DNA of 64,000 bases from Macrostomum lignano (taxonomy: Eukaryota), in contig NIVC01001411.1 of the NCBI GenBank assembly GCA_002269645.1, positions 1 to 64,000 on the forward strand, in the 5' to 3' direction. The number at the start of each line of letters is the position of its first letter. The stretch's first letter is position 1. Both the position numbers and the translations under genes were made by a program. Below are positions 8,467 through 59,639 of this stretch, one piece after another. The notes below the pieces were generated by a model. The model worked only from the letters and a program-made list of their open reading frames with translations. It made no database searches and was not told where the DNA came from.

Positions 8467-8485
8467 CCTGGCCATTTCTATTGGC

Positions 8486-8521
<36 letters not shown>

Positions 8522-8533
8522 GACACACACACA
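8467..8533 (+). repeat. (CA)n microsatellite
   Basis: Run of CA dinucleotides. Confidence 0.95.
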
Positions 8534-9167: not shown

Positions 9168-9205
9168 CTGATGCATTTCGTCTAATATTGCACATCTTCA
9201 GGGTC
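9168..9205 (-). ncRNA. Degenerate minimal hammerhead motif (Penelope-like)
   Basis: Minus strand GACC-CTGAAGA-tGTgcaatattagAC-GAAAT-GC-ATC has the same layout as 7025-7063, with palindromic ATGCAT and a weakened stem II. Confidence 0.45.
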
Positions 9206-10183
9206 GAAATTTATTTGAACCAAATTATTTAATGCAAACAGTATATATAGTGAGTGGAGAGAAGTATGAAAGTACATGTAATTTTGATGGTTTAAAGCTT
9301 GCACATATTAATCGAAAGTGGAAGCATTATTGGTAGGGGAGAGTGCATGTTGGTTTCATTCTAGTCCAGTTATTAGCAAGGTAAACGCTGCATATTTTAG
9401 CCCTCAATTGCAAAAAGGTTGCCGACCCCTGAACTAAATGTTTTTTTATAAGCCATCAAATTTTACTGATTGTAAAAGCCATGTGATGTGATCACTCAAA
9501 ATTGGTCTCATTTGTTGGTGGTGTGGAAGAGCCTTAACTTATAAAATAGAGAAGCAGATTTTCAAGATATAAAGTGAATTTGAACCTTTTTGGCATCTAA
9601 ACTTGACCTTCTTGTATGCCAAAAATTTTGTGCAGCCTTGGTTGAGTTATAAAACTCGTGAGTCGTGACCTTTGATACTCTCTGTCTCTGCCTTTATCTA
9701 CCATCAACTATCAATCAATGAGTCAATAAACATAAGTCTCGGCTTTTTCCACATTTGATGAATTTCTCACCATAGCAGTAGCAGTGTGTGTGTGACAGTG
9801 AGTACTCTGACCCGATTGAGCTGGTGGGCAATGTTTCTGCGAGTGCGATACTTATGGGAAAGGCCTGGTGCTAAAAATAGCCACTCTAGTTTACTAGAGA
9901 TTTCTTCACATTTATTACCCATTCTCAGGCGAGAGTAGAAAATTGTGGCGGAGAGTGGGGCGCTGCGGCACTCTCTTGCCTAATGACTGCGTGCCTGACT
10001 CTCATTGGCTGGCTGTTTGGCCGTGAACCCTTAATAGGTATAATAGAAGCCTTGCGTAGCTTCGGTTTGTTGAGGCCTTTGCTTAATACTCGTGTTCTAG
10101 AAATTTCTCTGCTTGCTTTACACATAAATAAAACATTTCCAGCTCGTGGTCGAATTGATCTGACCAATCTCTCCGACTTTTCA

Positions 10184-30000: not shown

Positions 30001-31232
30001 CGATCGGTGCACGCTAAAAGTAAAAAAAACGGTTTCGTTAGTATGATTCTTGCCTTTTGAAAACAAAGTGAGATTGAATACACTCGCAGAATTTGATTCA
30101 AAAATCACAGTTGGTGTTCCAATGGTGACTGCAGTTATTCCAAGGCAGAGTTGACGTCATTGATGCGAAGGTGTAGTATATAGAAATGGATATTATTATG
30201 TTGTAGTAGGTTGACACTGTTGTGGACAAGAACACCATCGAGTAGCCAAGACCTGTGGAGGATGCGAGGATAAGGAAATATTTTTTTAAAAATAGGTTCG
30301 CTAAAGCGGACCCTTCTTTGTACTGACTGACGAGTCAAGTGCTAAGAGTTAGAACTGCCGCGCCCGTACAATGACTAGCGGATTCTAGACTGCACTAAAA
30401 GGTGTTAAGGCAAAGCGAAATCGATCATACGGGTTGGTGACTAAAATTTTCCTATTTCTAACGAACTATTTGATCCATACGAAATCACAGACAGGCTAAT
30501 TCTAACTCGGGAGCAGACTTAAAAACTTCAGGTAAAACAACTCTCAAGCGTCGATTTGTGCACACCGGTAAAGATGGGCGCGAACTCCCAGCAGGTCGCC
30601 GGGCCCTCGCTGGTGAACTGTCCCAGGCTGAGGTCCAGCAGGAACACAGGAATGCCGCACAACAGCAAAAGGATGGCGTAGGGTATCAGAAACGCGCCAC
30701 CGCCGTTGCTAAAGCAGAGGTAGGGAAAGCGCCAAAAATTTCCCAGACCGACCGCGTAGCCCAGGCAGCTGAGCACGAAGTCCAGCCGGCCCGACCAGTT
30801 GCCTCTTTCCGGGTTCTCGTCCACGCTGTAGTTGACGGTGGACCGGTGATCAGCCTCCCTGGAGGCCCTGTCCCGACTGCAGCTGCTCCCGATCCCATTG
30901 ATGCCGCTGCCGCCTCTTTTAAAGGGTTGCCTAGCGACCCCGCCGCCTCTGCCGCCGTCCGAGGCCTTGACAGTGAGCTCGGCGCGGAGCTGACGAATGA
31001 ACCGCTCGCGTTGCTGGGCCGGGGTTTCCTTCAGCCACTTGATCTGCTTTTTCTTTTCCTTCCGCAGGTTGCATTGTTGGCTTTCATTAGAAACAGATTC
31101 CTCTTTATTGCTTATGGTGTTTTTTTGATCCGGCTTTTGCTGCTGATGCTGCTGCTGTTGTTGTTGCTGCTGATTATCATCGGTAGTCAAATCGATTGGT
31201 GGCAAGTTATTGGATGATTTTTGCTCCGGCAT
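27094..31232 (-). CDS. SLC6 Na+/Cl- dependent amino-acid transporter (GlyT2/PROT-like), paralog A; exons 31232-30566, 30252-30109, 30013-29854, 29769-29273, 29184-29072, 28592-28294, 27683-27399, 27223-27094; ~764 aa
   Basis: [43 protein letters not shown]; [17 protein letters not shown]; [19 protein letters not shown]; GLAFIVYPE; LGIDSQF. All exon phases join without stops. Intron 4 uses a GC donor. Confidence 0.92.
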
Positions 31233-33410
31233 TTTTGTCCGGTGCTTGTCATTTTTCAGTTATGAGATTTTAAAGCCGCTTTGCTGATTTACACAAACAG
31301 TTTATGGTAAATCCCTGCAGATTAAAAATGCTAGCTTTCAACGGCTGGTCAGTTCCTCCGTAGAACTAATATATATATTGTCGTCCTTGAGTTACTTAGG
31401 CTTTTTGCAGTGTAGTGTGTTGTAGAACTTTCAGACAATGTTTACTAACCGTAGTGACATTTTTCAAACTTGGTGGCCAGTCAAAATAGCCTATACATGT
31501 ACCTACATGTACCTCTATTGGTTCTCCTCGTTCAATTCCTTCCCAGTCCTTTTCTACTACTGTCCACTTTAGAAACTTTAGCCTGAGAGCCGGGTGCGTT
31601 ACTGCACAGCTACCGACCCTCAATCACTGACTAAACAGAAACAGAATAATGTAGACTGCCAGCCAGCGGCTGCCTAGCTCTTTTCTCCTGCACCAGCTGT
31701 GAGCAGTACGACTCAGCGCGGATAAAGCGTCTTACCTGCTGTCAGTTTTATGCGCAGAATCAGAACACGGTCGTGGCTCAAGAGGTCAGGCGCGCCGCGT
31801 TTACCACGGACTGCGGTGGCCCTCGCCCTTAATTTAGGTGGCAGCACGAATTTATCTGCTCCACAATGTAGCTGGTGGTGATTGTGGCATTGGCAGGATG
31901 AGTTGCAAGCCGCGACCACAAAAGCCAGTTCAGATGGCGCAATCTTATAGTTACAGTTTGAATTGAGCCAGTTAAGTTTTGACCTAATTTGTTCACCCAT
32001 CTAAAACAGTAGGGAATCTCGCTTTCGTATATTCAATTGTTCCTTTTTGAAGTTTTCTAGCCAGAGCTGCAGCGATTCGGGAAAATTTTGGATAGTATGC
32101 AATAGTATGCAAGTTTGAAAAAATATGAAAAATGCTAAAGTTTGTGTCCTCGGTAGGTGTTGCGCATTGAGCTGCAGCTCGTCGACGTTGATGATTGAGG
32201 TAGACAGAGGGTCTGTGACCGGCGGGAGTCCAGCCAGCTCGCTGACGGAGGGTCTATGGGCGCAGGTGACGAAATAAATTTCGAAAAATGTGTCATAAAA
32301 TGTTTTTTTTAGACAGAAATTAAGTGTGGCTTCGCTGGGGCCTCGATTATTTCTTCTTTCTCACCCTATCGAAATTTCCACCAAGCCTCTCCTTTTCTTG
32401 TCCTTTGTTCTTCTGTCCGCTTGCACACTGGTTTTACGTTCCTAACCCGCCTGGATAAGTGGTCCGGCAGTTTGTCCGTATACACGTCCGGGTGTCATCC
32501 GGGGTTGTAATGTATTTTTCCCATTTGATTCGTCCGGAAAAAACCGGAGGAAAAGTTTAAAATCGGACCAAAATGTCTGGAAAAAAACCGATTGGTCCGG
32601 TTGAAATCCGGACTGTCATCCGAAAACTTGTCCGGAAGTTCATCCAGAATTAACCGGACCACATGGCGGGTAATTTTCCGGACAAAACCGGACGACTGCA
32701 TCAGACGCGTAAACCAGATGACTACCCGGATCAAAAAGCGGACGAAAACCGGGCAAAGAGAGATTCACGTGATCCGGACGAAAATCCGGGAGAACATCCG
32801 GATGGAAAGCGGAAGTACATACTTAGTGCACTGATGAAAGTCACGCTGACTTTAATTCATGGCGAGGCCTTTAAATGCAGACGCGAAATCCAACGAGATT
32901 TGTGTTGAAATGTTTTAAATAAAAAAGAAGCTTTACAAAGACATATTCACGACTGGTTTCCAGTAACATTTTTTGTTTCCAAGTGGCACAGCTGAAGCTG
33001 CTTGTAGTTATGCTGCACGAACACCCAAAGCAGGGGCTTAAACCGGCAAGAACACTTTGTATTTTACGAACATTCATCATCGTCACATCATCTCACAAAA
33101 TGCTAATATAGTAGGTGCAAAAAGTCACACTGACCACAATCACCTCTCAAATCACGAAATACAAAAAGTTGGTGCATAAAGTCACACTGGCCACAATCCC
33201 CTTACCCCAATCCTCAAAGGGCCAGAACCACCCTGCTCCAATATTCTCAAATGGCCAGAACCACCCTGCTCCAATATCCTCAAATGGCCACAATCCCTTT
33301 CCCCCAGTCCTCTCTCCGTCTATCTCGAGATCTGTCCATGTCTGTGATCTGTCCCCGTCAGTCAGCTCTATCGATCACCAGCAATTCACGACCCTGTTCG
33401 TCCCTGATCA

Positions 33411-35374
33411 TCAATCGTTCAGCATCTCCAGCAACAAGTCACTTGGACGACTGTCGCCGTCCAATTCGCCTGCGTTGAGAAACTGCGTCCCAGTGTTATG
33501 AGACTCCTCAGTCTGTTCGGTAATTATGCGCAGAACATGTTCTGCAGAGGTGGTAGCCTTCGAGCGAGATGACTGGCCAGGTGTGCGGGCCGCAGTCGAA
33601 CGCTTGGGTCGGCTGCGCTTCGGCAGTCCCAGCTGCAATCTCGCCGTCTCGCCGCACCGAGTGAATGCGCGATGCAGTTCGTTGCGGTAAATTGGCACCT
33701 CGGCGTTCTGCAGCCACTGCCTCGCGACAGCAACTTTGGCCGGGTTCGCCGGCGCCGAAACGTACCCAGCAATTCTTCGGCCTGACAGGGATGAGTTCGC
33801 CAATTCTTGCGACGTAAAGACAGCCCTAAAGACAGCACGCAGTAGCGCCAAGCGCGTATAGCGCCGCATGGCAACTGCGTCTAGGTCGACCGCCTGCTGA
33901 TCTTCCATCGCCTTCTTATATTCTTTGTGTCGGTCTTCAAGTTCAGACCGGAGTCGCAAAGGTACAGAAAAAAACTTCTGGCTGTCGGAAAGGGCGACCA
34001 GTCCGCCGGTAGCAGAGCTAGTGGCGGTCCCTTGCTCCGCGTCACATGCGCGGATTAACGCGCGCGTTTCGGCAACAGACAGGTTGCGATCAGCGGAGAA
34101 GGTTGCCTGGTCGCCAAATGCGTCATCGTCAGCAGACTCGTCCGCGGAGGAGTGCGCGCTAGAAACAGCGTCACCAAAGGTATAATCGGGGCGCACATGT
34201 GATGCAGCTGCAGCAGCACCTGAAGTGGTTGCACTTGCGGCCGGCAAAAGGCAATTTGACGCCCTGGCGAGCAGCGCGTTGGCGGTGTCGACATTACGCA
34301 GTAGGCAATTGTTGCGCGCTTCGGCCTGCTCGACCTGCATGACCAGCTTCCGCTCCATTTTGGCCTGCACACTCGTCTTGTGCAGGAGCGTGCGGTTCTG
34401 TGCCAGCAGGTTGGTCTCAGAAGTACGGAGGAGCTTAAGTTCGCCACCTGCGTATTTATTTGAATTGGAAGGATTGACAGGTGAATCAGCTAACTTATGG
34501 TTTGCTTCTGCTTATATATGTGGACGGAATGCGTCAGTTGATGAATCTAGATGCATGCAGAATACGTATTCATCTAGATTCATCTAGATTCATTGTCGTA
34601 CGACAATGCAGATCGATCTGATGACCCCATGAGTAACTTAATCAGAAACTTACGCAGGGATTCGGTCAAGGCCTTCTCCCTTTGGAGCTCAAGCACGAGA
34701 CCGCGACAGGAGCTGCAGGACCGCGGCAGCTCGGCGGGTGCCGCGTGGACGTTAGTCAAGCTGGCAGCACCAGCAGCCTCCCTTTTCTTGTCGAATGGGC
34801 CCTTTATTAGTGTGCCCAGATAGCGCCGGGCCGTGCTACGCTTGCTCCGAGCTGTCACGACAGCGACTACGGCGCCGGTGTTTAGAGGCAGCTGCACATC
34901 CGACCGACGCGAAATGATGGCACTGGTGGACATCAGGCCGGAGTCTGTTGACACTACCTCTGTTCGCTGGTGGAAGTCGGTATACTGAAATACAAAAAAC
35001 CGGGCCTTGGCTTCGGCTTTAAACGGCACCAATTCAGGTTCGTTATCTTCTTCGGCGGCGAGTCGATTCCGCGGAATCGGAACTTCTTCCGAATGAGCAG
35101 TGCTATCGATGGCAGTCGGATTAGCGACGCTTAATCCACCTGGCGGATTTAAATCCGCATCTGCCACAGCTGCGGCGGCGGCGGCGGCGGCGGCGGCTCC
35201 AGTCGGGACGTTGGCACCCGAATCGGTTGCCGTAGCCCGAGCCGACACCTTGGCGACACTGAATGGTACTCCTATTTTCTTAGAAACACCAGACGGCTTC
35301 TTTATTGTTGCATGCGTTTTTTTTGCCTCTTTACGTCTTTCTTTCTCCGAAGCGTCGCGACACGTGCGGCCCAT
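33411..35374 (-). CDS. Transposon accessory protein with coiled coil and C-terminal BEN domain; exons 35374-34654 and 34447-33411, ~585 aa
   Basis: GTAAGT donor (34653) and GCAG acceptor (34448), both phase 1, join the two ORFs through a heptad-like stretch (LELQREKALTESL|RGELKLL...). LLRAVFRAVFTSQELANSSLSGRR...NPAKVAVARQWL...RCGETAR fits the BEN-domain pattern (ll..vFt.eEla.ss..G...L.p.kv..i). Confidence 0.75.
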
Positions 35375-35930
35375 GATGGCAGTTCTCGTGAACGCTGGAA
35401 AAGATATGACATGAGGTTTGCATTTCCGCGAGATCTGTACAGGAGTCATCGTCTCTGATCCTCGAGCACTATAGGTGACTGAGTACTTGGTTATGTACAA
35501 CGGGTTCGTAAGGAGTTAGCAGCGGGACGGAATGAAATAACAAACAAGACTGACGGATATCACAAAGCCAAAAAAGCGCCGGTCCTTTTATATGTGTTTG
35601 CACTACAGCAACCTCGACACCATTGCACTTCAGCAACCTCGACACCATTGCACTTCAGCAACCTCGACACCATTCAACTAAAAAGTTTAAACTAAAACTA
35701 AATACTAAAAATTCAACTAAAACAGAAATCGTCAACACAAGTAGAAAAAGTGTGGAAGGATGAAACAGCATATGAACAAGAGTTGCGCAGCAGTTCTTCT
35801 AATATAAAAAACGATTTCACCTGTCCCCACATGTGGGGAAATATTTCTATCCCTATCCCTATGATATCCCTATCCCCATCCTATTTCAACTAGTCCCCAT
35901 GGCGCGACCATGGTGGGGAACCAAAGCAAT

Positions 35931-36701
35931 TCAATCCTTCTTTGCAGACTTAGGTTTCGGCGCATCATAGGGAGCAAGGCCGCGAAGGGGCCGCATACGG
36001 CGCCTGCCTACTCTCATCAGCTCCACCGGAAGTGGTGGCGGACTGGGGGGCATGTCGATGGAAAAAAAGTTTGGCGCCTGGATAATCGGACGATGCCGAT
36101 GGCGCCCATGGCGCTGCTGGCGCTGGTCGCGAACTTCGGCGGGCAGGTTGGCGTACCAGGCTTCACAGTCTGGGCAAGTTTGCGCAGGAAGGCGCTGCCT
36201 GTCATACCGCCGGCGTGAGTCGAACGTCGGCGGCGGCTCGTCCGGAAGCCTATTGTAGTCAGCAGCGTACTGCTTGCGTACTTGCGTACTTGCGTCAACT
36301 TGCGTACTGCTAGCGACTGGCGTCGGACGGCGGAGCTCTGAGGGCGACAGGACTAATTCCTGGATCTCCTCCTGCGCAACTGCATCTTCGGACTCCACGG
36401 CTTGTGGAGACGAGTCCCAGGCCTGACTGTCCAACTGCTGGACATGGGCGACCGGTGAGCCTAGAGTAGTATGTGTGTCGTCCGACTCGACCTCCGAATC
36501 TACCTGGGCGGCGGGTGAGCCTAGAGTAGTATGTGTGTCGTCCGACTCGACCTCCGAATCTACGGAATCTCCTAGTAGCTTATCAACCCCTTCGCCGATA
36601 AGTCCGTCCAAAATCAAGGACCAGTCTGGAGTCCCGGATAATTGACCCGTGCGCCGGGACATGTAGCTGAAGTGTAAGGCGGTGGAACCCTTTGTACTCA
36701 T
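35931..36701 (-). CDS. Transposon-borne protein with CtIP/Sae2 C-terminal domain, 256 aa
   Basis: aa 163-218 RRRYDRQRLPAQTCPDCEAWYANLPAEVRDQRQQRHGRHRHRPIIQAPNFFSIDMP aligns with human CtIP [58 protein letters not shown] (CxxC and RHR motifs). The acidic N-terminal part contains a 60-bp duplication (DSEVESDDTHTTLGSP x2). Confidence 0.82.
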   Translation of the reverse strand: MSTKGSTALHFSYMSRRTGQLSGTPDWSLILDGLIGEGVDKLLGDSVDSEVESDDTHTTLGSPAAQVDSEVESDDTHTTLGSPVAHVQQLDSQAWDSSPQAVESEDAVAQEEIQELVLSPSELRRPTPVASSTQVDASTQVRKQYAADYNRLPDEPPPTFDSRRRYDRQRLPAQTCPDCEAWYANLPAEVRDQRQQRHGRHRHRPIIQAPNFFSIDMPPSPPPLPVELMRVGRRRMRPLRGLAPYDAPKPKSAKKD

Positions 36702-37337
36702 ACGTGCTAAGCAATTACTTGAACAACCGTTTGCAACCCGTTAGTGCATGTACAAGAGGGCTGCAGAAAAGAGGAAAAACGTATACATAGTTACAGTGCA
36801 GCGGCAAATACAACTGTATTTCTAATTAATCAGTTATACACATACGTATACGTAAGTAAACCAAACATTCAGTAATATGGAAACCGGTAAGGTATGAAAT
36901 AGTACTGCACCATTCGTGCAGACGTATCAATAATAATTTAAGTGATTATGAAATTATACTGCCTCATGTGTAATGTTTGCGAAACGAAATATTTATTATA
37001 TAATGAGATAATTAGTAGAACAATTTCAGTGCAGCTGACGTCTTCAATTATATACTCGAGTATTGGGGGATCACAAGCTGAGAGGAAACAAATTCCAAAT
37101 TTGCCTCTAAATTAGCTAAAGAGTTGAGAGCGCGACACAAGAATCATCGATGAAACAAAATCGTCCGACATGCAAAAAAAGCGACAGTCGCCACAATATT
37201 ATAAAGGGAATTATGTGCTTGAAATGAAAATTTTACACTACTTTCATGGACCGCTATTTTCAATTCCATTGATATTATACTTATACTATTGAGGCGGTGA
37301 TGATTAAACAGAAGCAACAGCTAATTAATACTGGAAG

Positions 37338-40162
37338 CTACTGGAAGCCGATCTGCGGGTGTGGCATAACGCATATTTTTGTGTCCGAAACGACGCACGA
37401 CCCAACGATGGCAGTGGCGTGAACTCGAACGGTGCGCTCATGTGGTAACGGACCGAATGGATTGACTAAGAGGCCTCGGATGTGCGCAAATCTGGCACCT
37501 CGGTTCTCCGAGTTGGCATGTACGGCACACAAGGCCTCCAGTGGGTCCACGACAGCGTCCTGTACGGGTAGGATGTGAAGGTTGACATACACCTCATCGT
37601 TGTCGCACTCGATTGCTAGAACGCGGCCGAACTGAAAGCTCGTCGGCTGGCATCCGGCAATGGCTACAAAGGCAGATGACGCCCGCGTCTCAATCTCCGG
37701 TAGATACTCCTCGAAATACAACCCTGACGGGAGAGACGCCGAACGCCAGCCGTGGGCCATGTTGTTAGGACGCCGTAGTAGAATGCCAGACGCCGCGCGC
37801 ATGCATGTCGTTCTGTGCCGCGCGCGTGGCTGCTGGTCGTTGTCGCGGAGAAGCTCCTCAGCCTGCATGACTGCCAGCTCGCGCTCAACGGCTCCGACAA
37901 TCTCCACATCCGTGCGGCGGGACCCGTGAATCTGGCGACGCAGTCTGGTATGCATCGATTCAAACAGCCCGGCGGATTGACGGTTCAGAGGACCTGCCAG
38001 TATGGCATACGGCAGCATGTGGCAGCAGACTTGATGGGCGTTGTATGACAGAAATCGCAGCGAATAAAGGCGCGACAAGTTCGCGTGAAAGTGTCTCAGC
38101 CCGATTTCAACGTGGCGCAATTCTGCACGCGGCGCACCTTCTAAGGACATCCAGAAGATGCACGTGGAGAGGATTAAAATGTGCCAGTAGTGTTCCTCTG
38201 GCAGGAAGTCATCAAGGACGAAAGGCGCGAACGCCAACAACCACATTGCGTATTCGTGGCCGCGCATGTGTCTGATGTCCTTGAGAAGCCTGACAGTGTG
38301 ACGCTGAACAGTGCGAGGAACGCGAATGCGCCGAAGACGCTGGTCGATGTGGCTCAGCCGCGCGTGCAGGTCCGGACAATTTGTGGCGCCTCGATCCGGT
38401 TTTTCATGACGCACGAGGAACAGCTGGTACAAAATATTGCGTACCAGGCCGGAGCACAACTGGTGCAGGAAACACGGTGGACAGCCGCGGACAAAGTCAA
38501 ACCCGTGCAGTCGAGACAGCGGTGACAGGCCACGGACACCGAGGACGTCAGTCCGAATGTCGCCACCCTGCTGTGCGTGCTGCTCAGCGAGAGTGTGAGT
38601 GTCGCTGGTCGACCGCACTACAGTCTGAACGCATCCTAGACGTCTGGCCTGATTAAGCATCGCGTCAGTAACCCCGACGCCGTAGACTCGTCCATGGCCT
38701 GATGGATGCAATGATGTCCGGATGTAGCACTTCTCGCATCCGTAGATAGCCGAAAAACGCTTCATGCACAGAGCGTCCGCTCTCGCTGGAGCGTCGAACA
38801 GCGCCATTAGCGGATGCAGATGCAATCGACGCTGAACCCCGAGGCTGTCGATATACTGTACACCATCGAAGCGCAGAGTATTCAGTGCATTTACGACGAT
38901 TGGCAGAAAGGCGGCGGCATGGACCTTTTTCTTGCCGGCCCACACGCCACACTTCATCACGAATCGGAGCTTCAGCCGCTCGTGCACTTCGTTAATACTC
39001 AGATAGACGGGGCACACCTCGACATTGCTAGTGCAGAAAAGAGGAAATCCGTCTGCACAGATGGTGTATGTAAGGTCGCTCCGAGTCTCGGGTTCGATGT
39101 TCTCGAGAAACGACTTGTACAGTTCGCTGTTGGCAAAGTGCAGCTTCTCTTCGTCCAGTGCAAGCCGTTCAATCGGAAATGTTACGCTCTGTAGAAGACC
39201 GCGAGATTCAACGAATGTTCGGATCTGCGCAGGTATATCGAATAACCAGAAGTTGGCCACATTTTCCGACGTACAGTGCGCACAATTAGAGTTTCCTGGA
39301 TCGCAGCGCTGCTCGGAATGTAGATAACAGTCGTTGCAGACAGTGTAACATGTTGACGACCCCGAGATTGTTCCCCTCTTCTTCAAAGTTTCACGCAATG
39401 TTCGTCCGTGCTGAGGAAGGCGGTTGTCGGGTACTAGCCTGTGCAGTAGTGAAAGCAGCCTTGTCGTCCCGCTAACTGTCAGGTTCAGTTTCCTCGCGCA
39501 GGAGCTGACCTCACAAATCGCCTCTCCGAGCGAAACGGGCAGAGCGTCGTGCCAATTGACTCCTGGAAACCCCGGGACGTCCTCGTCGTTGTCGGAGTCT
39601 GTGCTCTGGCCGTCATCAGACTGCGAACCTGGGAGGAATATATTGTGTGTGGTGAGCGTAGTGCGCATGTGTTCGGTGGACAGTGTGAGTGCAACGTGCA
39701 GGTAACACAAAAGTATCAAACATGAGCCATTGGGATGGATCCACAATCCACGATAAGCCAACTCTCTGACTGGGACTCACCACTAGAGGAAGAATCCCCG
39801 TCCGAAGTGCTGTCAGAGCTCGACACCGGGTCCCCATTGCGGCCATCGGCCTGTGCGCCACCGTCGTCGGACTCTGGATTGTCTATAGGCAGGTATACAG
39901 ACTGCTCATCTCGAGATCGAGATACTGTAGATGTAGAGGCGGATCCGCTTGCAGCTGCGACGACTGCAGCAGTCCCACTGGTGCCTGCGCCGCCGGACTG
40001 GACTTCGCCGGAGTCGACATCTGCAGAAGTTCCTGCGGTTGGACGCAGAGGTGATCGCGAACCTTCTTGTTGACTATTTGAATTGGCCAACGCACGCTGC
40101 CGCATGTACTCTCGCATGTACTGCCTCCGCTGTAACCGCGGCGGTAAATCTGAATTGTCCAT
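37338..40162 (-). CDS. EnSpm/CACTA-type DDE transposase; exons 40162-39781 and 39628-37338, ~890 aa
   Basis: Uninterrupted frame with a zinc-finger-like C-x2-C...C-x2-C, CADGF (D1), FDAPAR (D2), GCEKC, CFLH (C/DxxH), RVPRTVQR, YNAHQVCCH, GPL and LFESM (E). A strong GTGAGT donor (39780) and CCTCCCAG acceptor (39629), both phase 1, join the Ser-rich ORF 39716-40162 to the main ORF. Confidence 0.9.
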
Positions 40163-41029
40163 GCAGTTTGCGAGTCGTGCAGTACTGAAAGAGATTGGGT
40201 TGGTTTATGATGTCTAGATGCGCATATTCACTGTAGCACTATCTGCTGTGTGACCTATTCATCTATCCACGTATAGAATGGACGACATGTTTCTGAATTT
40301 CTGAATTTCAGTAACAACTCGGACGAGACCAATTTTGTCCAACAATACCCGCTGTTTCCAAGACCTCTATGATCCCTATCTAACATAGTGTACTATCTAA
40401 TGTGTTGCACACATGCAAAAGATGCGAAGGCATCGAACAACATCGAAGTCTCCCATCAAAATCAGAACGTGGGAAATGTCATACGGAGAAGTATATTTTT
40501 CTGTAGAACTTGGAGCATAAGAAATAGAACACGTTGTGCTGCTGTTTCTGGAACATGTGTTACAAACTGTGGGCATACAAGTAGGAGAAAGGTGCCATTT
40601 TCCACTATTCAATTCCACGTGCTCCACTATCACCCGGAAACATATCCGCTCTTCGTCCGGTTGTTAGGCGGGCGACAGCCCGGATTAAAATGCGGATGAC
40701 TTTCCGGACGACAGTGACAATTCATCCGGCTAGTCATCCGTAAAGTCATCCGACGCTTCATCCGGTTTTTGTCCGGGTAAACAAGCGGATATAATTCCGG
40801 ACTAAAATGGACAAATTAAGTAAAAAAATCACCACTTTGTCCGGCTCTGATCCGGAAACTGGCCCGCTACTTTGTCCGGCAGCTTAAACCGGATGAATAC
40901 CGGACGAAAAGCTGCATTTGTCCGGAATCGACCACCAAACGCGGACCAATGCGGACGACGGCCGGACGACAACCGGATCGGCTATCCAGGCGGGAAGGTT
41001 ATGTGATGCGGCTTCTGACTTTAGAAGTG

Positions 41030-41350
41030 GTCTTCTCTCCCTGTCCTCTCCCTGTCGTCCTGTCCTCGTCTCCCTGTCCTCTTCTCCCTGTCCTCTTCTC
41101 CCTGTCCTCTCCCTGTCCTCTTCTCCCTGTCCTCTTCTCCCTGTCCTCTTCTCCCTGTCCTCTTCTCCCTGTCCTCTCCCTGTCCTCTTCTCCCTGTCCT
41201 CTTCTCCCTGTCCTCTTCTCCCTGTCCTCTTCTCCCTGTCCTCTTCTCCCTGTCCTCTTCTCCCTGTCCTCTTCTCCCTGTCCTCTTCTCCCTGTCCTCT
41301 TCTCCCTGTCCTCTTCTCCCTGTCCTTCCCTCCCTGTCCTCTTTTCCCTG
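41030..41350 (+). repeat. 14-bp pyrimidine repeat (ctccctgtcctctt)
   Basis: About 20 units. Confidence 0.95.
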
Positions 41351-42479
41351 TATTTTGGTTATTACTATTTTTAGCCATATTTTTCCAGAGTGCGTTTAGA
41401 TTAATTATTGTGTTAGGATTTCAAAATAGGTCAAAATAGTTAGGCGCAATTCCAGAACCAGTTTGGCCAAAGCCGAGGGGTCGACGCGGCTTGCAACTCA
41501 TCGATGTACCCCGGCTTAACGCGGCCAGCCAATCAGATTCGGCCTGAGAACGCGCCGCCGCTCCAGTGCAATCGGAATTACTGACCGGCCAGTCAGACAC
41601 CCACCACCCGGCTTGAGTCTTTTTCGTGTTGCCCGTCTCACCATCATCTGAGCAGCGAAGATACCGTTGCAATCTCCTTTCTTTGCCCCCAGCCCGACCA
41701 CATTCCGCCTGCCGATTAGGCAGCTTTCGGCGTTCTGCGTCTTGAGAGTGCGCCGCTGGTCAAGCGTGGTCTAGATAGGCGACTGTTGTTGTGAAGTCAG
41801 TACGTGCTCTGTTCGGAGACTCCGCCATCTGGCAGAAGGAGTGCCAACCTATAGGAATTTGTCGGCGCAGCGCTGACAGCTGAGACAACAGGAGCCTCGT
41901 CCATAAAGTAGCGCCCCGAATTAGGCCAGAATTAGGAAAACTTCGCAGCGTTCCTTTTAGCCGTTTCTCCCCGGTTTTAATAATCTCTATCTGCCGCGTC
42001 AGTCTTTACTTATCGTGAGATCTACCAGTAAAACCAGAAGATCTTGGCAAGCCCTACAGTGTACTGTGTCTCCCCGTTCGTGGGAATTAATCATGAGTCA
42101 CCGCGTTTTATCGCTAATTTTAGCATCTTGGCCAGTCAGTCAATCAAGTCATCAGAAGAGAAGGGCTCTTTGTGGTCTTACTTAAGTTTAGAGCTTGTTT
42201 GTAACCTGACCAAATCCTCTCAGAACAGCTTCTGCATCAAATGGTCTCAGCATAGCTTGGCCATAGAGAAATTTCCGATCCTTTTTCCATGGAGTCTTCT
42301 GCATACAGGGTGTGGAAAATTGATTGCCTCAGTTGGAAAACTGATTGCGACTTTAAGCCACTTTTGTTTGGGCCATAGACTACTTTGACTAAGCGAAGCC
42401 ACCGAGTCTCTGTATACTTTTGAAAGCTCAGAGGGAAAATTGACTGTCCTATTTGCCGTATCGCAATTGCATTCATCAC

Positions 42480-43445
42480 ACTCTCCTTCCCTCCCTGTCC
42501 TTCCCTCCCTGTCCTTCCCTCCCTGTCCTTCCCTCCCTGTCCTTCCCTCCCTGTCCTTCCCTCCCTGTCCTTCCCTCCCTGTCCTTCCCTCCCTGTCCTT
42601 CCCTCCCTGTCCTTCCCTCCCTGTCCTTCCCTCCCTGTCCTTCCCTCCCTGTCCTTCCCTCCCTGTCCTTCCCTCCCTGTCCTTCCCTCCCTCTGTCCTT
42701 CCCTCCCTGTCCTTCCCTCCCTGTCCTTCCCTCCCTCTGTCCTTCCCTCCCTGTCCTTCCTTCCCTGTACTTCCCTCCCTGTCCTTCCTTCCCTGTACTT
42801 CCCTCCCTGTCCTTCCCTCCCTGTCCTTCCCTGTGTCCTTCCCTTCCTGTCCTTCCCTCCCTGTCCTTCCCTCCCTGTCCTTCCCTCCCTGTACTTCCCT
42901 CCCTGTCCTTCCCTCCCTGTCCTTCCTTCCCTGTACTTCCCTCCCTGTACTTCCCTCCCTGTCCTTCCCTCCCTGTCCTTCCCTCCCTGTCCTTCCCTCC
43001 CTGTCCTTCCCTCCCTGTCCTTCCCTCCCTCTGTCCTTCCCTCCCTGTCCTTCCCTCCCTCTGTCCTTCCCTCCCTGTCCTTCCCTCCCTGTCCTTCCCT
43101 CCCTCTGTCCTTCCTTCCCTGTCCTTCCCTCCCTGTCCTTCCCTCCCTGTCCTTCCCTCCCTCTGTCCTTCCCTGTGTCCTTCCCTTCCTGTCCTTCCCT
43201 CCCTGTCCTTCCCTCCCTGTCCTTCCCTCCCTGTACTTCCCTCCCTGTCCTTCCCTCCCTGTCCTTCCTTCCCTGTACTTCCCTCCCTGTACTTCCCTCC
43301 CTGTCCTTCCCTCCCTGTACTTCCCTCCCTGTCCTTCCCTCCCTGTCCTTCCCTCCCTGTCCTTCCCTCCCTGTACTTCCCTCCCTGTCCTTCCCTCCCT
43401 GTCCTTCCCTCCCTGTCCTTCCCTCCCTGTCCTTCCCTCTCTGTT
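42480..43445 (+). repeat. 14-bp pyrimidine repeat (ccctccctgtcctt)
   Basis: About 65 units. Confidence 0.97.
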
Positions 43446-43800
43446 CTCTTCAATAAAAGAAAGGAAGCAGTACGAACAACAGGACTTTTTATAAGTAGTT
43501 GTTATTCGCTCATAAAGCTAGAGTAAAAGTCATCCTTGCGCAGTGTAAAACTAAAATGAAACATGCTTTGCGGAAATATTTGCTTCAAGTAAGCAGGAAT
43601 GTATTATTGGCTTTTATTAAGACATTTGAGGTGCTTTAAAAGTGTGGCAACTAAAAGTTCATTCTTTAGTGGAGGTGAAGTTAGCAAGTATAATTTGCAT
43701 AGAGAATATTCGATGAAAGTTAAGCAAAGATATTACGGCAAAGTGATTGGCAATTTTGAAGAGAAAAGCGTAAAAACTAAACCTCCCGACAAACATTCCG

Positions 43801-46800
43801 TCAAATATCTGTGGAGCCGCCGCCTCCCCCAGGAATCGAGTGCAGGGAGCCACCCGCGTTGAAGCCGGGGTTCGAGTGGCTCTCTCTGTTCGCACTGGCG
43901 ACTCGCCCTCCATCACGTCTCTACAATATACAATATACGGGAAAGTCTTAGCAGCTGTCCCGGTTTATCGGTGAAGAAGCAGTTTTTATGGGAGGCTGAA
44001 GGCTTCGTGAGAGTAAAAATTTTAATTTACTTACCTGCGCTGCTGAATCCAAGTTTTGGAACTCCTGCTCGCTGGGGAAAACATCCGTGTACTTTATCAG
44101 CTTCACCGGATCGAGGTAGAAGTGTCGCAGAGCGCCAAGTTTCTCCAGGTAGGACGCCATCAACAGCCGGTGACTGTATATTAGAGAAGGCGTAAATTTT
44201 GTTTGAATTGGGAAAATCAGAGACTACAAGGACCGCTAGAAGCAACAGGGTAAAAGAAGTTTCTCAAGACTGAAGGTTGAAGGAGCTTTTATAATGCGCA
44301 GAAATTTTAATGAATGCACAAAAACAATTCTGAAAATTCTTGTACTCGTATCGTAATACAGGCTCAAATGTTCGAGTGCATGTTCGTACCAACCTCATTC
44401 AGACTTCATGCGCATTGCGCTCTTCATGAACTCTTAATGAAATATGTAAATTTTGTGCGCAGTGAAATTTTGCAGCTGACCTGCCAATGACCAAGGCGGA
44501 ATGCTGACCTGCCAATGACCAAGGCGGAATGCTGACCTGCCAATGACCAAGGCGGAATGCTGACCTGCCATTATCTAAGGCGGAATGCTGACCTGCCAAT
44601 GACCAAGGCGGAATGCTGACCTGCCAATGACCAAGGCGGAATGCTGACCTGCCATTATCTAAGGCGGAATGCTGACCTGCCAATGACCAAGGCGGAATGC
44701 TGACATGCCAATGACCAAGGTGGAATGCTGACCTGCCAATGACCAAGTTGGAATGCTGACCTGCCATTATCTAAGGCGGAATGCTGACCTGCCAATGACC
44801 AAGGCGGAATGCTGACCTGCCAATGACCAAGGCGGAATGCTGACCTGCCAATGACCAAGGCGGAATGCTGACCTGCCAATGACCAAGGCGGAATGCTGAC
44901 CTGCCAATGATCAAGGTGGAATGAGACTTTTTGATTTTGTATTTTAAAAGCATTTATTTATTTCCCGTCGCCTCCCCAACGACGGGCGAAGATTGCTAGT
45001 TTCGTCTAATTTTATAAACCGTTATACCCACCTGGGCAGTGCCGGTCCCCACTTGTAGGACGGAATCGACAGGCCGAGCAGCCGCTGCTTCCACGGAGTA
45101 CCCGAGGGCTCCATGAACAGCTTTAGCAGCCCGGTGCCGAAAATGATGAGCACGGTGGCGATGGCGATCAGCCAGCCGAGCGCGTCCGCCCAGCCGGGAT
45201 AAAAATCCCCGGCCCCCGCCGTGTACTCGCTCCGCCCGTAATCAACCCAGTTGAAGATGATGATTGCCATGATTAGTGCCGGCGAGATGTATTGCCACAG
45301 GTATCGCCAGATGGGCCTGAATGTGATCAATAAGGCTTAATTAGCGCCAAGACGCACTACACCTGAACCTTGAGTCGTACATTCAAAGTAGCAAGCCAGA
45401 ACCGCAAACTTACGAAATTGGCCTTTGCATAATGAGCCCGATGTCCTCGCTGAACCGGTGGAAATTCCCGAATCCGGGCCGGCCGTAGACCCAGCCGACT
45501 GTGACGCACTCGAAGAAGCCAATCAGCAGGATTGTCCAGCTGCCCGCGTAGCTGTCAACAATATTCATCAAGTAGAGGCCGCCCGAGCAGGTGAACGGCA
45601 GGCCCAGGAGGAACATCACCACGGAGACCACAGCAATTACTGGCGGCTTGTGCCGTCGGAGGCCGCGAAACTGGTCGCAGAGCGAAGTGATCAACGTCTC
45701 CACCATGGCGAACTGTGGTTGGGGCGTAGATGAATCGAATTTAAATTAAGAATACTTTTATTACTAATAAAATGCTATCGAAGTGTAGCGCGATAGTGAA
45801 CGCTTCCAATCTCCATTTACCGACTGTGATAATTAATAATAACCTACTAGCCTCGGTCACTGCAAGTAACTGCTAATGAGCTGCTAATCAATGAGCTACA
45901 ATGTTAGTAACACAACAAACCTGACTGTCCACTCCGAGATTGAGAATCATGAAGAAGAACAGAATGGCCCAGAAGGTGCTGCCAGGAAGCAACTTCATGG
46001 CTTCGGGGTAGATGATGAACGCCAGTCCGAATCCTACAATATAAAGTTATTCAGTTATTTAGAAACCGAACTAACCGAGGCATCGATATTTTTCTTGAAT
46101 GCAGACCTCAAAACTCACCTGACTGCGAAACGTCCTTGACGGGCACCTTCAGATTGCCAGCCAGGTGACCGATGAAGCTGAATATGACGAAGCCAGCGAA
46201 CACGCTCGTCAGGCAGTTGGCCGAAGTTACAAAGAACGTGTCCCGGATGACGTTGTTATGAAATCGATTGTAGCTGGAGAGCGACATCAGGCCGCCCCAG
46301 CTGCAGGACAGCGAGAAGAAGATCTGGCCAGCCGCGTCCTTCCAGACCCGAGCTTTGCCGAGCGCGCTGAAGTCCGGGACGATGTAGAACCGGATGCCCT
46401 CGATCGCGTTTTCCAGGGTGACCCCGCGGAAGAACAAGATCAGCAGGACCACGTAGGGAAACAGGGCGGTGAAGTACACCACCTTGCCGGATGACTTGAT
46501 GCCTTTGACCATGCAACAGTAGATGACAATCCACGAAAGCAGCAGGCACAATACCAGCTTCCAGTCCGGCGAGCCAAACTTGTTGATGTCGCTGCTGGTC
46601 TTCAAAACCTCGTGACTGTTGTGCATTGAAGGAGGATGTAGAGTTGCGTTAATGACGATCGCAGGAGCGCGTGGTTCCGCATATATTTCAACAATTAGTT
46701 TACAGGACGTAGATAAGAGTTCAGTTATTATCAAGATATGGTTTATTAAGAATGCCAAGTCAGATTGAAGACTTAAAAATGCAATCAAAATAATCCAATA

Positions 46801-49686
46801 AAGACTTTAAATGCACTTATTGAAGGAATAAGTGTTAAGGAGCTTATAGGAGATCATTTAAAAGCAGAAGTTCATTGAAGACACTATTTTATTTCGTTGG
46901 AAGAGAAGCAGTTGTCCAACTTACTTGAAGTATTCATCGGCAGGCAGAATCCTATGCAGTTTGGTCACCTGGGTGAATAAGCTTTCGTTGTACAGACCCA
47001 ACAGTTTGGTCCCATTGTAGCAGGTGCCGTTGAGCTGCTGATCACTGAGGTTGCATGTCACCAAAGGCAGCCGAGAGCTGCAAACTGGAAGGTCGGTCAG
47101 GCACCAATGAAAAACATTATTTTGCAATGGTCATGATCTGAAGACAAAGGGCTTACGGGGCGTATTCCAGGCATTGTCGCAGCTGCTCCATGGCAGGTCA
47201 CTGTTCATTGAGGCAAACAGATAGTAGATCGATATAGCAATTATCATGTTGTAGTAGATGCCAACGATTGTGGACAGGTAGGTCATAGCGTAACCGACTC
47301 CTGAAAACACATTCAAGGATTTAGCATTGTAAATTTCTTTAAAGTACAAAGTAAACAACTCGCAGAGCTCAGATTCAGGAATTAGCTCGTAGAATTATTG
47401 CAAAATTTGAGAAAAAAGACGGAGACAGATTTCAGGACTGGTGAGTAGAAAAGAGGCGGATTTGAGCACTGAGAGAGGGGCGGATTCTAGTACTGAGGGA
47501 GGGGCGGATTGAAGTATTGAGGGAGTTGTGGATTCAAGTACTGAGGGAGTGGTGGATTCAAGTACTGAGGGAGGGGCGGATTCAAGTACTGAGGGAGGGG
47601 CGGATTCAAGTACTGAGGGAGGGGTGGATTCAAGTACTGAGGGAGTGGTGGATTCAAGTACTGAAGGAGGGGCGGATTCAAGTACTGAGGGAGGGGCGGA
47701 TTCAAGTACTGAGGGAGTGGTGGATTCTAGTTCTGAGGGAGTGGTGGGTTCTAGTTCTGAGGGAGTGGTGGATTCAAGTACTGAAGGAGGGGCGGATTCA
47801 AGTACTGAGGGAGTGGTGGATTCAAGTACTGAGGGAGGGGCGGATTCAAGTACTGAGGGAGTGGTGGATTCAAGTACTGAGGGACGGGCGGATTCAAGTA
47901 CTGAGGGAGTGGTGGATTCAAGTACTGAGGGAGGGGCGGATTCAAGTACTGAGGGAGGGGCGGATTCAAGTACTGAGGGAGGGGCGGATTCAAGTACTGA
48001 GGGAGTGGTGGATTCAAGTACTGAGGGAGGGGCGGATTCAAGTACTGAGGGAGGGGCGGATTCAAGTACTGAGGGAGGGGCGGATTCAAGTACTGAGGGA
48101 GGGGCGGATTCAAGTACTGAGGGAGTGGTGGATTCAAGTACTGAGGGAGTGGTGGATTCAAGTACTGAGGGAGGGGCGGATTCAAGTACTGAGGGAGTGG
48201 TGGATTCAAGTACTGAGGGAGGGGCGGATTCAAGTACTGAGGGAGTGGTGGATTCAAGTACTGAGGGAGTGGTGGATTCAAGTACTGAGGGAGGGGCGGA
48301 TTCAAGTACTGAGGGAGGGGTGGATTCAAGTACTGAGGGACGGGCGGATTCAAGTACTGAGGGAGGGGTGGATTTATGTAGTGGGGGAGGCGGCAGATTA
48401 AAGTCCTGAGGGAGGGGTGGAACTGAGGGGGCGGATTCATGTACTGAGAGAAGGACGAATTCAAGTACCGAGGTAATGTCAAATTTATAACTAGAGGTCT
48501 AAGAAGTACTGAATCACACAAACCGGTAAAGATGGGCGCGAACTCCCAGCAGGTGGCCGGGCCCTCGCTGGTGAACTGTCCCAGGCTGAGGTCCAGCAGG
48601 AACACTGGAACACCGCAAAGCAGCAAAAAGATGATATAGGGAACAAAAAACGCGCCACCGCCGTTGATGAAGCAGAGGTAGGGAAAGCGCCAGACGTTGC
48701 CAAGGCCGACCGCATAGCCCAGGCAGCTGAGCAGGAAGTCCAGCCGACCAGACCAGTTGCCTCTCTCTGGGTTCTCATCCACGCTGTAGTTGACCGGAGC
48801 TTCGCCGGCGCTAGCAGCCGCAGTAAAGTTGCCGAGGCCCTGCAGCGGCTCCTTCGGGGCCAGCTGCGCTCGAAGCTCTCGAATCTGGCGATCTCTCATC
48901 TGCGTGGGCGTCTCTCGGTGAACGCTGCTGCTGCTGCCATCCACGGAATCCTTGGAGGCAGCCGTGGCAAACACTTGCCGGCCACCGCTGCTGGTCGCAC
49001 TGTAGCGCCGGCTGGAGCGCCGCCGCCGCTGCTGCTGGCCATGCGGGCGCTGATGTTGTTGCTGTTGTTGCTAAAGTTGAGAAAGGTGGGAATCGAATTA
49101 TTTTTTCTGCTGTGGACACCTGGCACTGAATAACTGACCTTGACCCCAGACTGCAAGGCTCAGGACATGAGACATGGGAAAGCTGAAGAACACGTGAAGA
49201 ACACAAGACATAAGGCGCAATGGACAGGACATTGGATACAGGGAACGGGGCATAGGACTCTGAGCACAAGACAAAAGACACGAGACACAGGGGATACGAC
49301 ATGGGACACAGGGGGCACTGGACACAGGACTAGACGCATTATGAGACACGTGAAATTGGACTTGGCTAGGAGTCATGGACGGAGTTATAGGACCCCCATA
49401 GAGCATAGGACACGAGACGCACGCATGCAAACAGGAAACACAAGAAATAAATGCAGTGCAGATTGAAAAAATACTTAAACTACAGTCATGGCCTGCTCGA
49501 ATATGTAAAAAAGATGTGTACGCTGTTTAAGGAGAATCTCAGCGGTTACCGAAAATCGACTCTCCTAAAAGTCACCTCAAAGTCGACAGCACCGCCTCCG
49601 TTCTCGAAATTTCTGTACCGAGCGGCCCTGGCCAGAGGGGCCAGCAGCTGCCTCAGTTTGCTGCTCTTGGGCTGGTGCTCCGTCAT
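43801..49686 (-). CDS. SLC6 transporter paralog B; exons 49686-49576, 49070-48524, 47300-47157, 47084-46925, 46615-46119, 46033-45921, 45712-45414, 45316-45032, 44173-44035, 43920-43801; ~804 aa
   Basis: Same SLC6 motifs ([29 protein letters not shown]; [19 protein letters not shown]; LGVDSQF). Internal exon lengths 144/160/497/113/299/285 are identical to paralog A. All introns are GT-AG with consistent phases. The first and last exons are less certain. Confidence 0.9.
44470..44915 (+). repeat. 28-bp intronic minisatellite (gctgacctgccaatgaccaaggcggaat)
   Basis: About 16 units. Confidence 0.96.
47460..48440 (+). repeat. 24-bp intronic minisatellite (ggattcaagtactgagggaggggc / ..gagtggt)
   Basis: About 40 units in two main variants. 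Confidence 0.97.
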
Positions 49687-58597: not shown

Positions 58598-59639
58598 CTT
58601 GCGGAGCAGGCGTCGACACCGGAGTCTGGGTCTGGCTGAGGAGCGGCCGTCACTGCTGGCTGCGGCGTCTGCTGCGGAGGTCAAAGAGGGTAAATTAGCG
58701 ACCAGGGGAAATTAGGCCGCTTGATATTGGCTTGGCGTTCTCTTCTGCCCCAGAAGAAGCCAGTGAGAGTGTCGAATTAAAAAGCAGAACTGACAAGAGT
58801 TGGCGAGCTCGCCATCCAAGCGGCTTTCATTGGCCGCTCCCGCCCCCCATGCGTCTGTCGTGCAGGGATTGGCCCCTGGGGCCTCTGCTTGGCAACACTT
58901 GGAATTCCGTCAGTGAATTTTCTTTCATTTCCTGTCTTCCTCTCCAAGTTCGGGGGTGAGGCGAGCGATTCCTCACATAATCATTTCGCCTCTTTCGATT
59001 TTCTCGACGAAGGGAAAGTCAAATATAGATTTTTTGGATATTGTTTTTCACTACGCCAGTAGAAAATATTCCATGAAAAAGCCTTCGCGGCACAGGTTAC
59101 TGTAACTAGCAGCTATCGCGGCAGCGGCTGCGGAGGCTGCGACTCCGATCCCAGAGTAAATAATTGGCTTGCCAACATAAGGTCGAATTTGCTCAGCGCT
59201 AGCGGGGAAAAGTTTCCAGATTGCTCAAGCTCAGGGAAGATGCTTAGATGGAATAATAACTGTACTGAACTTGCTCTGGAATTTCGGTCATAGGAAGCAC
59301 AAAGCCGAGTTGGGAGCAAACTATTGTCACAGGGAAATTGCCAAAACCGACTGGAGCTTCTATGTAGGTGGCTTAGAAAGCTGCTCAAAAGCAGCTCAGC
59401 TTCATCGAGAGCTGCTGGGTGCCCGTAGCCAGCCGATGTGATTGGCTAATTAAAGTTGACAGGAGAGACGCTATCGATGGGGGAGACAGGCGGAACAGGG
59501 CAGAGTCCGGGGTCAGCGGACTCAGTGCAGAGAGAATTCAGTCTTCAGCAGACTGTCGTGAAAAAACACAATGCATCCATAGTGAGCTCAACAGCCTTGC
59601 ACTTTGCTGAGGCAAGTGCGCTCCGAATAGAGCATGCAC

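Follow-up and report, generated by a model that had tools for sequence, protein, structure and literature searches.

Does a DNA transposon of the flatworm Macrostomum lignano carry a piece of a gene for processing broken DNA ends, and, if it does, has the element any use for it? The question is posed by a 64,000-nucleotide stretch of contig NIVC01001411.1 (assembly GCA_002269645.1, positions 1 to 64,000; hereafter the window), in which an 8,549-bp element bounded by terminal inverted repeats (TIRs; 32446-40994) encloses an open reading frame (ORF) resembling the C-terminus of CtIP (RBBP8, Sae2, Ctp1). The ORF is homologous to CtIP, lies inside the element, is accessory to it, and is a fragment of the gene. 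It is probably a transduplicated terminal exon of host CtIP with no selected role for the element.

Homology and build of the CtIP-like ORF

The ORF listing bore out the 256-amino-acid (aa) frame reported by a first-pass annotation of the window, intact and on the strand of the large transposase ORF (37338..39761, minus), with residues 163-218 at nt 36048-36215 (RRRYDRQRLPAQTCPDCEAWYANLPAEVRDQRQQRHGRHRHRPIIQAPNFFSIDMPP). These residues had been proposed to reproduce the CtIP/Sae2 C-terminus. The assignment holds for them, and the homologous stretch is longer than proposed, extending over aa 140-243. The CxxC motif (C176-P-D-C179) and the RHR motif (R200-H201-R202) both fall in invariant columns of a 17-sequence alignment, and all of the alignment-invariant residues are present in the ORF (two arginines, a leucine, the CxxC and the H-R of RHR). 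The motifs RxxxxRxxL, CxxC, RHR and P-N-F-(F/W) are shared with host CtIP/RBBP8, Sae2 and Ctp1, as is a basic C-terminal tail near the stop codon (RRRMRPLRGL), in which the RRxRPL pattern is kept.

The Pfam SAE2 model (PF08573) matched aa 163-194 of the ORF below threshold (E 0.051; 15.1 bits against a cut-off of 19.8), a score that, taken by itself, would nearly have overturned the proposed homology. The Macrostomum host CtIP-like proteins likewise score below this cut-off, so the CtIP of the M. lignano lineage is easily missed in annotation. An independent hidden Markov model (HMM) was built from ten C-termini that were Pfam-SAE2-positive or named RBBP8, with both the ORF and the closest M. 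lignano protein (P0003) left out. This model gave the ORF 48.4 bits (E 5.3e-14), and the runner-up among 1122 six-frame segments of the window scored 8 bits. The alignment of the ORF and P0003 to the ten CtIP C-termini by hhalign returned a probability of 99.3% (E 7e-21) over 102 columns. 

A word-indexed homologue search with the whole ORF gave no match, and an exhaustive HMMER scan was required. The phmmer analysis of aa 131-256 against 1.84 billion representative proteins identified only five proteins at E <= 0.001. The closest was P0003, with 56% identity to the ORF (E 1e-23). The others were P0004 (E 2e-10), which has an N-terminal coiled coil and a Pfam SAE2 match (5e-9); P0005, a fish CtIP (Pfam CtIP_N 4e-32, SAE2 7e-10); P0006 (SAE2 8e-13); and P0007, which has no Pfam family match. 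Three of the five (P0004, P0005 and P0006) pass Pfam SAE2 and so provide a transitive link between the ORF and the family. BLASTP of the ORF gave an E of 2e-36 over aa 140-243 against P0003 and of 1e-19 against P0004. A profile seeded with ORF-family sequences retrieved 66 proteins, nearly all of them Pfam-SAE2-positive and many named RBBP8 or "Ctp1 C-terminal domain". No useful sequence match in the PDB was found for the ORF or for the CtIP profile, and the domain is in no solved structure thus found. In the AlphaFold model, aa 150-235 were predicted with block means of the predicted local distance difference test (pLDDT) of 63-94, exceeding 70 across most of 150-200 and 210-230. Judged by its sequence, the C-terminal part of the ORF is a complete and genuine CtIP/Sae2 C-terminal domain.

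The N-terminal ~139 aa are acidic and predicted to be disordered. The pLDDT of aa 1-145 was mostly below 55 (block means 43-53), and the sole secondary structure was one 3-residue helical turn. As this segment has no helices, the coiled coil of CtIP is taken to be absent, in agreement with the first reading of the sequence, and Pfam identified no CtIP_N or coiled-coil family match in the ORF. We therefore describe the ORF as a fragment derived from CtIP, in which the Sae2-like domain is present and the N-terminal coiled coil is lacking. An apparent similarity of the N-terminus to the coiled coil of P0004 (BLASTP E 0.03 in a single comparison) was rejected as noise, the alignments being mutually inconsistent.

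At 57-62% GC, the ORF stands out from the AT-rich spacers on either side (35% and 42% GC). In both of its halves codon usage scores highest in the frame of the ORF, and the score resembles that of the transposase and the other genes of the element. Every indel relative to its relatives is in frame, as is a 60-nt tandem duplication (Table 1). Together with the kept invariant residues, these in-frame changes are mild hints of constraint, although the changes may predate capture. At the position equivalent to the cyclin-dependent kinase site of CtIP (human T847, yeast S267) the ORF has an alanine (Q-A-P-N-F-F), and so lacks the T/S-P pattern; an S-P site (PPSPP) lies 8-9 residues downstream. Because the M. 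lignano host protein has the same alanine, this is a trait of the lineage and not of the cargo.

The carrier element and the accessory status of the ORF

The ORF had been placed within a TIR-bounded element, on the strand of the transposase, and this was verified. The perfect 12-nt TIR, CCCGCCTGGATA, is present at both ends (Table 1) and has only these two matches in the window, in inverted orientation, with 0.22 expected by chance. The subterminal regions are rich in TCCGG/CCGGA motifs, which are 25- to 45-fold enriched at the ends relative to the interior of the element (2.1 per kb) and the rest of the window (1.2 per kb); they are presumed to be binding sites of the transposase or of an accessory protein. 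All coding capacity of the element is on the minus strand.

Splicing of the two transposase exons yields an uninterrupted 890-aa protein, the N-terminus of which aligns with that of its closest relative, P0001. By inspection, the transposase contains CADGF (D318), LFDAPAR (D406), C-E-K-C (425-428), H-QVCC-H (659-664) and LFESMH (E684), all conserved in P0001 and in the order D...D...C(2)C...H(4)H...E. The order D...D...C(2)C...H(3-4)H...E has been described as a signature common to EnSpm/CACTA, Mirage, Chapaev and Transib (PMC12730594), and on this pattern, read by inspection only, the transposase resembles the CMC/CMCT group. No Pfam transposase or DNA-binding family was matched by the transposase, by its relatives P0001 and P0002, or by gene B, the second gene of the element, and a profile search identified no PDB relative of the transposase. 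The AlphaFold prediction of the transposase core, made for three sequences, had a pLDDT of 36 and was unusable.

The spliced gene B encodes 610 aa; the central part of the protein is a coiled coil, and its C-terminal domain (...FTSQELANSSLSGRR...PANPAKV...) is conserved. Gene B has no Pfam or PDB match and no detectable similarity to TnpA. A resemblance of its C-terminus to BEN domains was unconfirmed by the Pfam and PDB searches. In the spacer that separates the CtIP-like ORF from gene B, three tandem copies of a 25-bp unit (TTGCACTTCAGCAACCTCGACACCA; 35598-35674) lie just upstream of a TATAAAAG-like box, and this region may be a promoter element for gene B.

Only two relatives of the transposase were found in a collection of 5.8 billion proteins. 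P0002 is an M. lignano protein, 35% identical to the transposase. P0001 shows 47% identity across 92% of the query (45.5% over 800 aa), and its gene lies on a marine metagenome contig of 10,198 bp from Tara Oceans (ENA ERZ976238; hereafter L001), of which positions 97-10043 represent a complete 9.9-kb relative of the window element. L001 has an 863-aa transposase and a two-exon gene B (7509-9342, +; 483 aa; intron 8185-8566), with the donor at the same codon position as in the gene B of the window. The two gene B proteins are similar by BLASTP (E 1e-28), and tblastn aligned exon 1 to L001 7869-8198 (E 2e-18). The TIRs of L001 are 33 nt long (97-129 and 10011-10043; CCCGCTGAAAAAATCGTCCGG...) and begin with the same CCCGC, and its subterminal TCCGG density is 61-63 per kb. 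It is flanked as AAT|element|CCT, with no duplication, though a metagenome contig may mix the flanks of different copies.

The transposase gene and gene B of L001 are separated by about 1 kb of AT-rich non-coding DNA, and no frame of L001 gave any CtIP-like sequence (tblastn E <= 10; motif search). In the window, the CtIP-like ORF is flanked on either side by co-oriented genes of the element. As it lies within the element and is absent from L001, which has the transposase and gene B, the ORF is accessory cargo outside the common gene set of the family, as had been claimed; this status comes from the comparison of two complete elements. Neither the cargo nor the element was found in JGI metagenomes (transposase and CtIP-domain scans) or IMG/VR. 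Exact-protein look-ups of the ORFs of the window found none on record; one query was a TTG-started ORF, which makes a poor test.

The first-pass annotation had assigned the element to CACTA (En/Spm), and the assignment stands in part. Consistent with it are the large size, the short TIRs, the dense subterminal repeats, the order of the transposase motifs as read by inspection, and the presence of a second gene, with two intron-bearing genes on one strand. Unlike En/Spm, both the window element and L001 have termini of the form CCCGC...GCGGG, no 3-bp target-site duplication (TSD) was seen, there is no match to Pfam or to a solved structure, and gene B is unlike TnpA. Because the termini are neither CACTA nor CA..TG, and the TSD is at most a 2-bp AA, the element is described as CMC-like and of an undescribed family rather than as strict CACTA. 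Its most likely identity is that of a cut-and-paste DNA transposon, structurally intact and from a little-described family. The window element, L001 and the one M. lignano protein form a transposon family without a Pfam transposase match, which appears to be undescribed and to have no further relatives in the collections searched.

Table 1. Coordinates of the features of the element and its cargo in the window.
Feature	Position	Strand	Details
CtIP-like ORF	35931..36701	(-)	ATG-to-stop, 256 aa, intact (ORF listing)
CtIP/Sae2 C-terminal (Sae2-like) domain	35973..36284	(-)	aa 140-243 of CtIP-like ORF
60-nt tandem duplication within CtIP-like ORF	36445..36563	(-)	2 copies, 96% identical, in frame; encodes DSEVESDDTHTTLGSP twice
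3' splice-acceptor-like site, strong	36761..36778	(-)	TTTTCCTCTTTTCTGCAG; 60 nt upstream of ATG of CtIP-like ORF
TIR, gene-3' end	32446..32457	(+)	CCCGCCTGGATA, 12 nt perfect; imperfect extension to 32467 (22 nt, 82%)
TIR, gene-5' end	40983..40994	(-)	CCCGCCTGGATA
Subterminal region, TCCGG/CCGGA-rich	32446..32830		54.6 motifs per kb
Subterminal region, TCCGG/CCGGA-rich, gene-5' end	40620..40994		53.3 motifs per kb
Transposase exon 1	39781..40162	(-)	ATG at 40162; acceptor-like ...ctctttcag before it, ends 40185
Transposase intron	39629..39780	(-)	152 nt, GTGAGT...CAG
Transposase exon 2	37338..39628	(-)	holds catalytic-core motifs; within 807-aa ORF 37338..39761
AATAAA polyadenylation-like signal	36992..36997	(-)	downstream of transposase stop
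Gene B exon 1	34654..35449	(-)	from first ATG of ORF 34580..35500
Gene B intron	34448..34653	(-)	206 nt, GTAAGT...CAG
Gene B exon 2	33411..34447	(-)	includes ORF 33411..34370; splice joins frames without stop

Two tandem sodium:neurotransmitter symporter (SNF) genes flank the element (30528-31232 and 45022-48974, both on the minus strand). An 18-nt perfect inverted repeat, GATGAGTTGCAAGCCGCG, was observed outside the TIRs, by about 550 and 510 bp (31897-31914, +; 41485-41502, -). About 0.01 such pairs are expected by chance and no TSD was seen; the repeat may mark the ends of an older element of ~1 kb that was the insertion target of the 8.5-kb element. A 14-bp satellite (CCTGTCCTCTTCTC) forms arrays just beside the element (41059-41351, 21 copies; 42473-43451, about 1 kb), which give rise to long but spurious ORFs in three frames. 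The window also contains other animal genes, namely a Bcl-2-family ORF (9983-10657) and an amiloride-sensitive sodium channel (ASC) ORF that is long and has a single exon (56861-58684). The Rfam and tRNA scans of the window were empty.

Origin of the cargo and its possible use by the element

The closest host relative, P0003, is PAA54340.1 of M. lignano (BOX15_Mlig004387, 395 aa), whose gene has three exons and is flanked by genes for an acetyl-CoA synthetase and for EMP24 (NIVC01002929.1). No transposase similarity was found in 23 kb around this gene. PAA88737.1 (P0072, 481 aa) belongs to the same 90% cluster as a paralogue or allele and carries an N-terminal coiled-coil-like segment, by which the M. 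lignano gene is recognised as an ordinary full-length CtIP-like host gene. The gene model of PAA54340.1 seems to be without the upstream coiled-coil exon present in PAA88737.1 (NIVC01002929.1, about 9600-10000).

The ORF is 55% identical to the M. lignano protein over 110 aa, and 25-40% identical to other CtIPs. The two share residues specific to the lineage, namely CPDCEAW, and QAPNFF where other CtIPs have TPxNFW. Within the M. lignano gene, all of the sequence that aligns with the ORF falls in the last exon, with a DNA identity of 70% over 141 nt. Unlike the host gene, which has an N-terminal coiled coil, the ORF lacks one, corresponds to the last exon only, and is located inside a transposon; no further CtIP sequence or coiled-coil exon was found elsewhere in the window. 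The comparison of the ORF with the host exon gave a synonymous difference (pS) of 0.82 and a nonsynonymous divergence (dN) of 0.45; as the synonymous sites are saturated, constraint in the host lineage and constraint within the transposon are not separable. These similarities suggest that the cargo was captured from a host gene of the flatworm type.

We propose that the element captured a piece of host CtIP, essentially the terminal exon, and placed it between the transposase gene and gene B. The capture was probably of genomic DNA, taken up together with the 3' splice acceptor of the preceding intron. An origin as a retrocopy was rejected: the absence of a poly(A) tract after the ORF makes it unlikely, there is no flanking duplication, and the aligned part lies within one host exon. 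The outcome would be a stand-alone 256-aa ORF with an acidic, disordered N-terminal half and a complete Sae2-like domain, without the tetramerising coiled coil. If translated, the product should act like the isolated C-terminal domain of CtIP, as a monomer that binds DNA through the RHR region; it would carry the C-terminal segments that contact RAD50/MRE11 and yet be unable to bridge DNA. The human domain in isolation (delta-N790) is a monomer that uses the RHR region for DNA binding and is unable to bridge DNA (PMC11317151). The C-terminal segments of CtIP, Sae2 and Ctp1 have been modelled on the site of RAD50 that telomere proteins occupy to inactivate MRE11-RAD50-NBS1 (MRN) (bioRxiv 10.1101/2023.03.25.534200), where a C-terminal Ctp1/CtIP peptide is cited as a stimulator of Mre11 (Zdravkovic et al. 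2021).

The splice sites of the element bear on whether such a product could be made. The acceptor-like site upstream of the ORF, TTTTCCTCTTTTCTGCAG, is one of only 7 sites of such strength on both strands of the window, and is separated from the ATG by an in-frame TAA (36741-36743). This acceptor may represent the end of a captured host intron, a working acceptor for transcripts of the element, or both. Acceptor-like sites were also observed just upstream of other start codons, with the AG at 40185 lying 22 nt before the ATG of the transposase, and sites at ~3918 and ~7490 of L001 lying 4 and 18 nt before the ATGs of its two genes. A cis-spliced leader exon was considered and rejected, as there is no GT[AG]AG donor in 40163-40994. 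M. lignano makes frequent use of spliced-leader (SL) trans-splicing and of operons (PMC8629364), and the acceptor sites in both elements, with no 5' donor, suggest that the genes may be expressed by SL trans-splicing or in an operon-like manner. From the stop of the ORF to gene B, no polyadenylation signal was found. Translation of the cargo would be possible from a transcript that is operon-like and trans-spliced. A splice from the exon-1 donor of the transposase (39780) to the acceptor at 36761 would be in frame with the CtIP-like ORF but for a single TAA, 13 codons before the ATG; this may be chance (1 in 3), or a trace of a former fusion of the transposase N-terminus to CtIP.

By default, a captured gene fragment has no function for the element that carries it, and the reading as a transduplicated terminal exon without a selected role is the one that we favour, while holding it as probable and not as certain. 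Since the element looks young and all of its genes are open, an open cargo frame is expected even without selection. Several observations weigh against this reading. No homologue of the N-terminal 139 aa was detected by the protein homologue search or by BLASTP against P0003, and for this segment the label of host exon is based on size, composition and the acceptor only. The parental CtIP gene is assumed to be in the same genome as the element. In comparison with host CtIPs, the ORF has a 2-aa deletion after RHR and a 4-aa deletion before the RRR of a VVRKK-type motif, the latter removing a near-invariant VV that is present in all of the compared CtIPs. One copy of the cargo-bearing element is present in the window, with no second copy found; with only two full elements compared, synteny does not settle whether the ORF was gained here or lost from L001. 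The TSD is also weak, as the flanks AA|element|AA represent a 2-bp match that is expected in 1/16 of cases by chance.

The last of these points, with the single copy of the ORF in the data at hand and the unrelated 18-nt inverted repeat that also flanks the region further out, could be read to mean that the ORF is not cargo, and that it belongs to the host's own CtIP gene or to an assembly chimera, with coincidental inverted repeats around it. We find this hardly credible, given that the genes on either side of the ORF have the same order and orientation in an independent element bounded by TIRs, that TIRs and enriched subterminal motifs are present at both ends, that the window has no coiled-coil exon or other CtIP sequence, and that the region lies between two tandem SNF transporter genes. 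The polarity left unfixed by two elements, and the AT-rich spacer of L001 as a possible site of deletion, would also permit the ORF to be an ancestral core gene, present early in the transposon family and lost in the L001 lineage. This is improbable, as the nearest relative is the flatworm host gene, with the flatworm-specific QAPNFF and CPDCEAW, at an identity well above the 25-40% of other CtIPs, which fits late acquisition from a host of that lineage. In addition, none of the four phmmer matches with genomic context adjoins a transposase, though three of them come from contigs of only 0.9-1.6 kb, on which neighbouring genes would not be visible.

The element may instead use the ORF, in which case the product, expressed by SL trans-splicing or by alternative splicing at 36761, would modulate MRE11-RAD50(-NBS1) at transposition ends; we regard this as a possibility, though a doubtful one. 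As a decoy on the CtIP site of RAD50, it would shield transposase-bound or hairpin ends from cleavage and resection by MRN and bias repair to end joining. As a cell-cycle-independent activator, it would aid the opening of hairpin-capped or protein-blocked donor ends. Tetramerisation is required for the function of CtIP/Ctp1 in vivo, whereas binding needs the C-terminal region only, and the decoy is preferred for this reason. The full proposition, that a stand-alone Sae2-like domain was acquired, came under selection, and is expressed from an operon-like transcript to control MRE11-RAD50, most plausibly as a decoy, is unlikely.

Use by the element would fit an ORF that is intact, with its own ATG and with a stop codon close to where the host protein ends, that retains the family-invariant residues and the basic tail and has only in-frame indels, and that lies behind a rare, strong acceptor of a kind that also precedes the other genes of both elements. 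It would likewise fit the frequency of SL trans-splicing and operons in M. lignano (PMC8629364), the interval free of polyadenylation signals before gene B, the DNA binding of the isolated CtIP domain (PMC11317151), and the modelling of C-terminal segments on the RAD50 site blocked by telomere proteins (bioRxiv 10.1101/2023.03.25.534200). In yeast, hairpins are left when the hAT element Ac/Ds is excised, and deletion of mre11 or sae2 results in no revertants (PMC3299998); the motif signature of the transposase is common to Transib/RAG1. Set against this, the formation of hairpins by this transposase family is an assumption, the 4-aa deletion takes part of a conserved motif, and the closest complete relative, L001, manages without the ORF. 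The ORF is known from one copy, for which the synonymous sites against the M. lignano exon are saturated, and in a young, intact element its open frame is expected without selection. Most gene fragments in DNA transposons, such as those of Pack-MULEs and of CACTA transduplication, have no protein function.

Comparison with known systems and significance

That DNA transposons capture fragments of host genes is well established, and the CtIP cargo is an event of this known kind with an undescribed cargo. As in the transduplications of Pack-MULEs, plant CACTA elements and Helitrons, part of a host gene lies between the ends of the element as an accessory, chimeric ORF. In contrast to these, the host is an animal, and the carrier is apparently autonomous and not a non-autonomous shell. 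The fragment is a self-contained domain, open, with its own start and its native C-terminus, and derives from a factor that processes the ends of double-strand breaks (DSBs). We know of no description of a DSB-end-processing factor as transposon cargo. Literature searches found no paper on CtIP or Sae2 in such a role, consistent with the first-pass statement that no described CACTA element with this cargo was known to its author.

Two other systems invite comparison. The TET/JBP dioxygenase genes of KDZ, Plavaka, EnSpm and other fungal transposons similarly represent an extra gene of cellular type beside the transposase, in some members only; those cargos recur across many families and copies (PMC12730594), whereas the CtIP cargo is here a single instance. 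If the product were a decoy, and only then, it would resemble the iDDR of TRF2 and the MIN motif of Rif2/Taz1, small polypeptides that protect ends by occupying the CtIP-binding surface of RAD50 (bioRxiv 10.1101/2023.03.25.534200). Those motifs are unrelated to CtIP in sequence, and the candidate here is, by sequence comparison, the domain of CtIP itself.

The cargo is a still-open copy of the domain that licenses MRE11-RAD50 to cut blocked or hairpin ends, and it stands out because cut-and-paste transposition is thought to make such ends. The carrier is of interest too: its 890-aa transposase has CMC-type motifs but matches no Pfam family, its CCCGC termini are unusual, and its relatives come only from a flatworm and a marine metagenome. 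Should the ORF be only a recent transduplicate, the locus represents a tidy but ordinary exon capture in an animal genome. If the element does use the domain, the locus would be a natural experiment on a mobile element steering the repair of its own breaks, and would show the effect of a monomeric, tetramerisation-free CtIP C-terminal domain on MRN. Selected control of MRN by this cargo, if true, would make it the first transposon-encoded regulator of the end-resection machinery.

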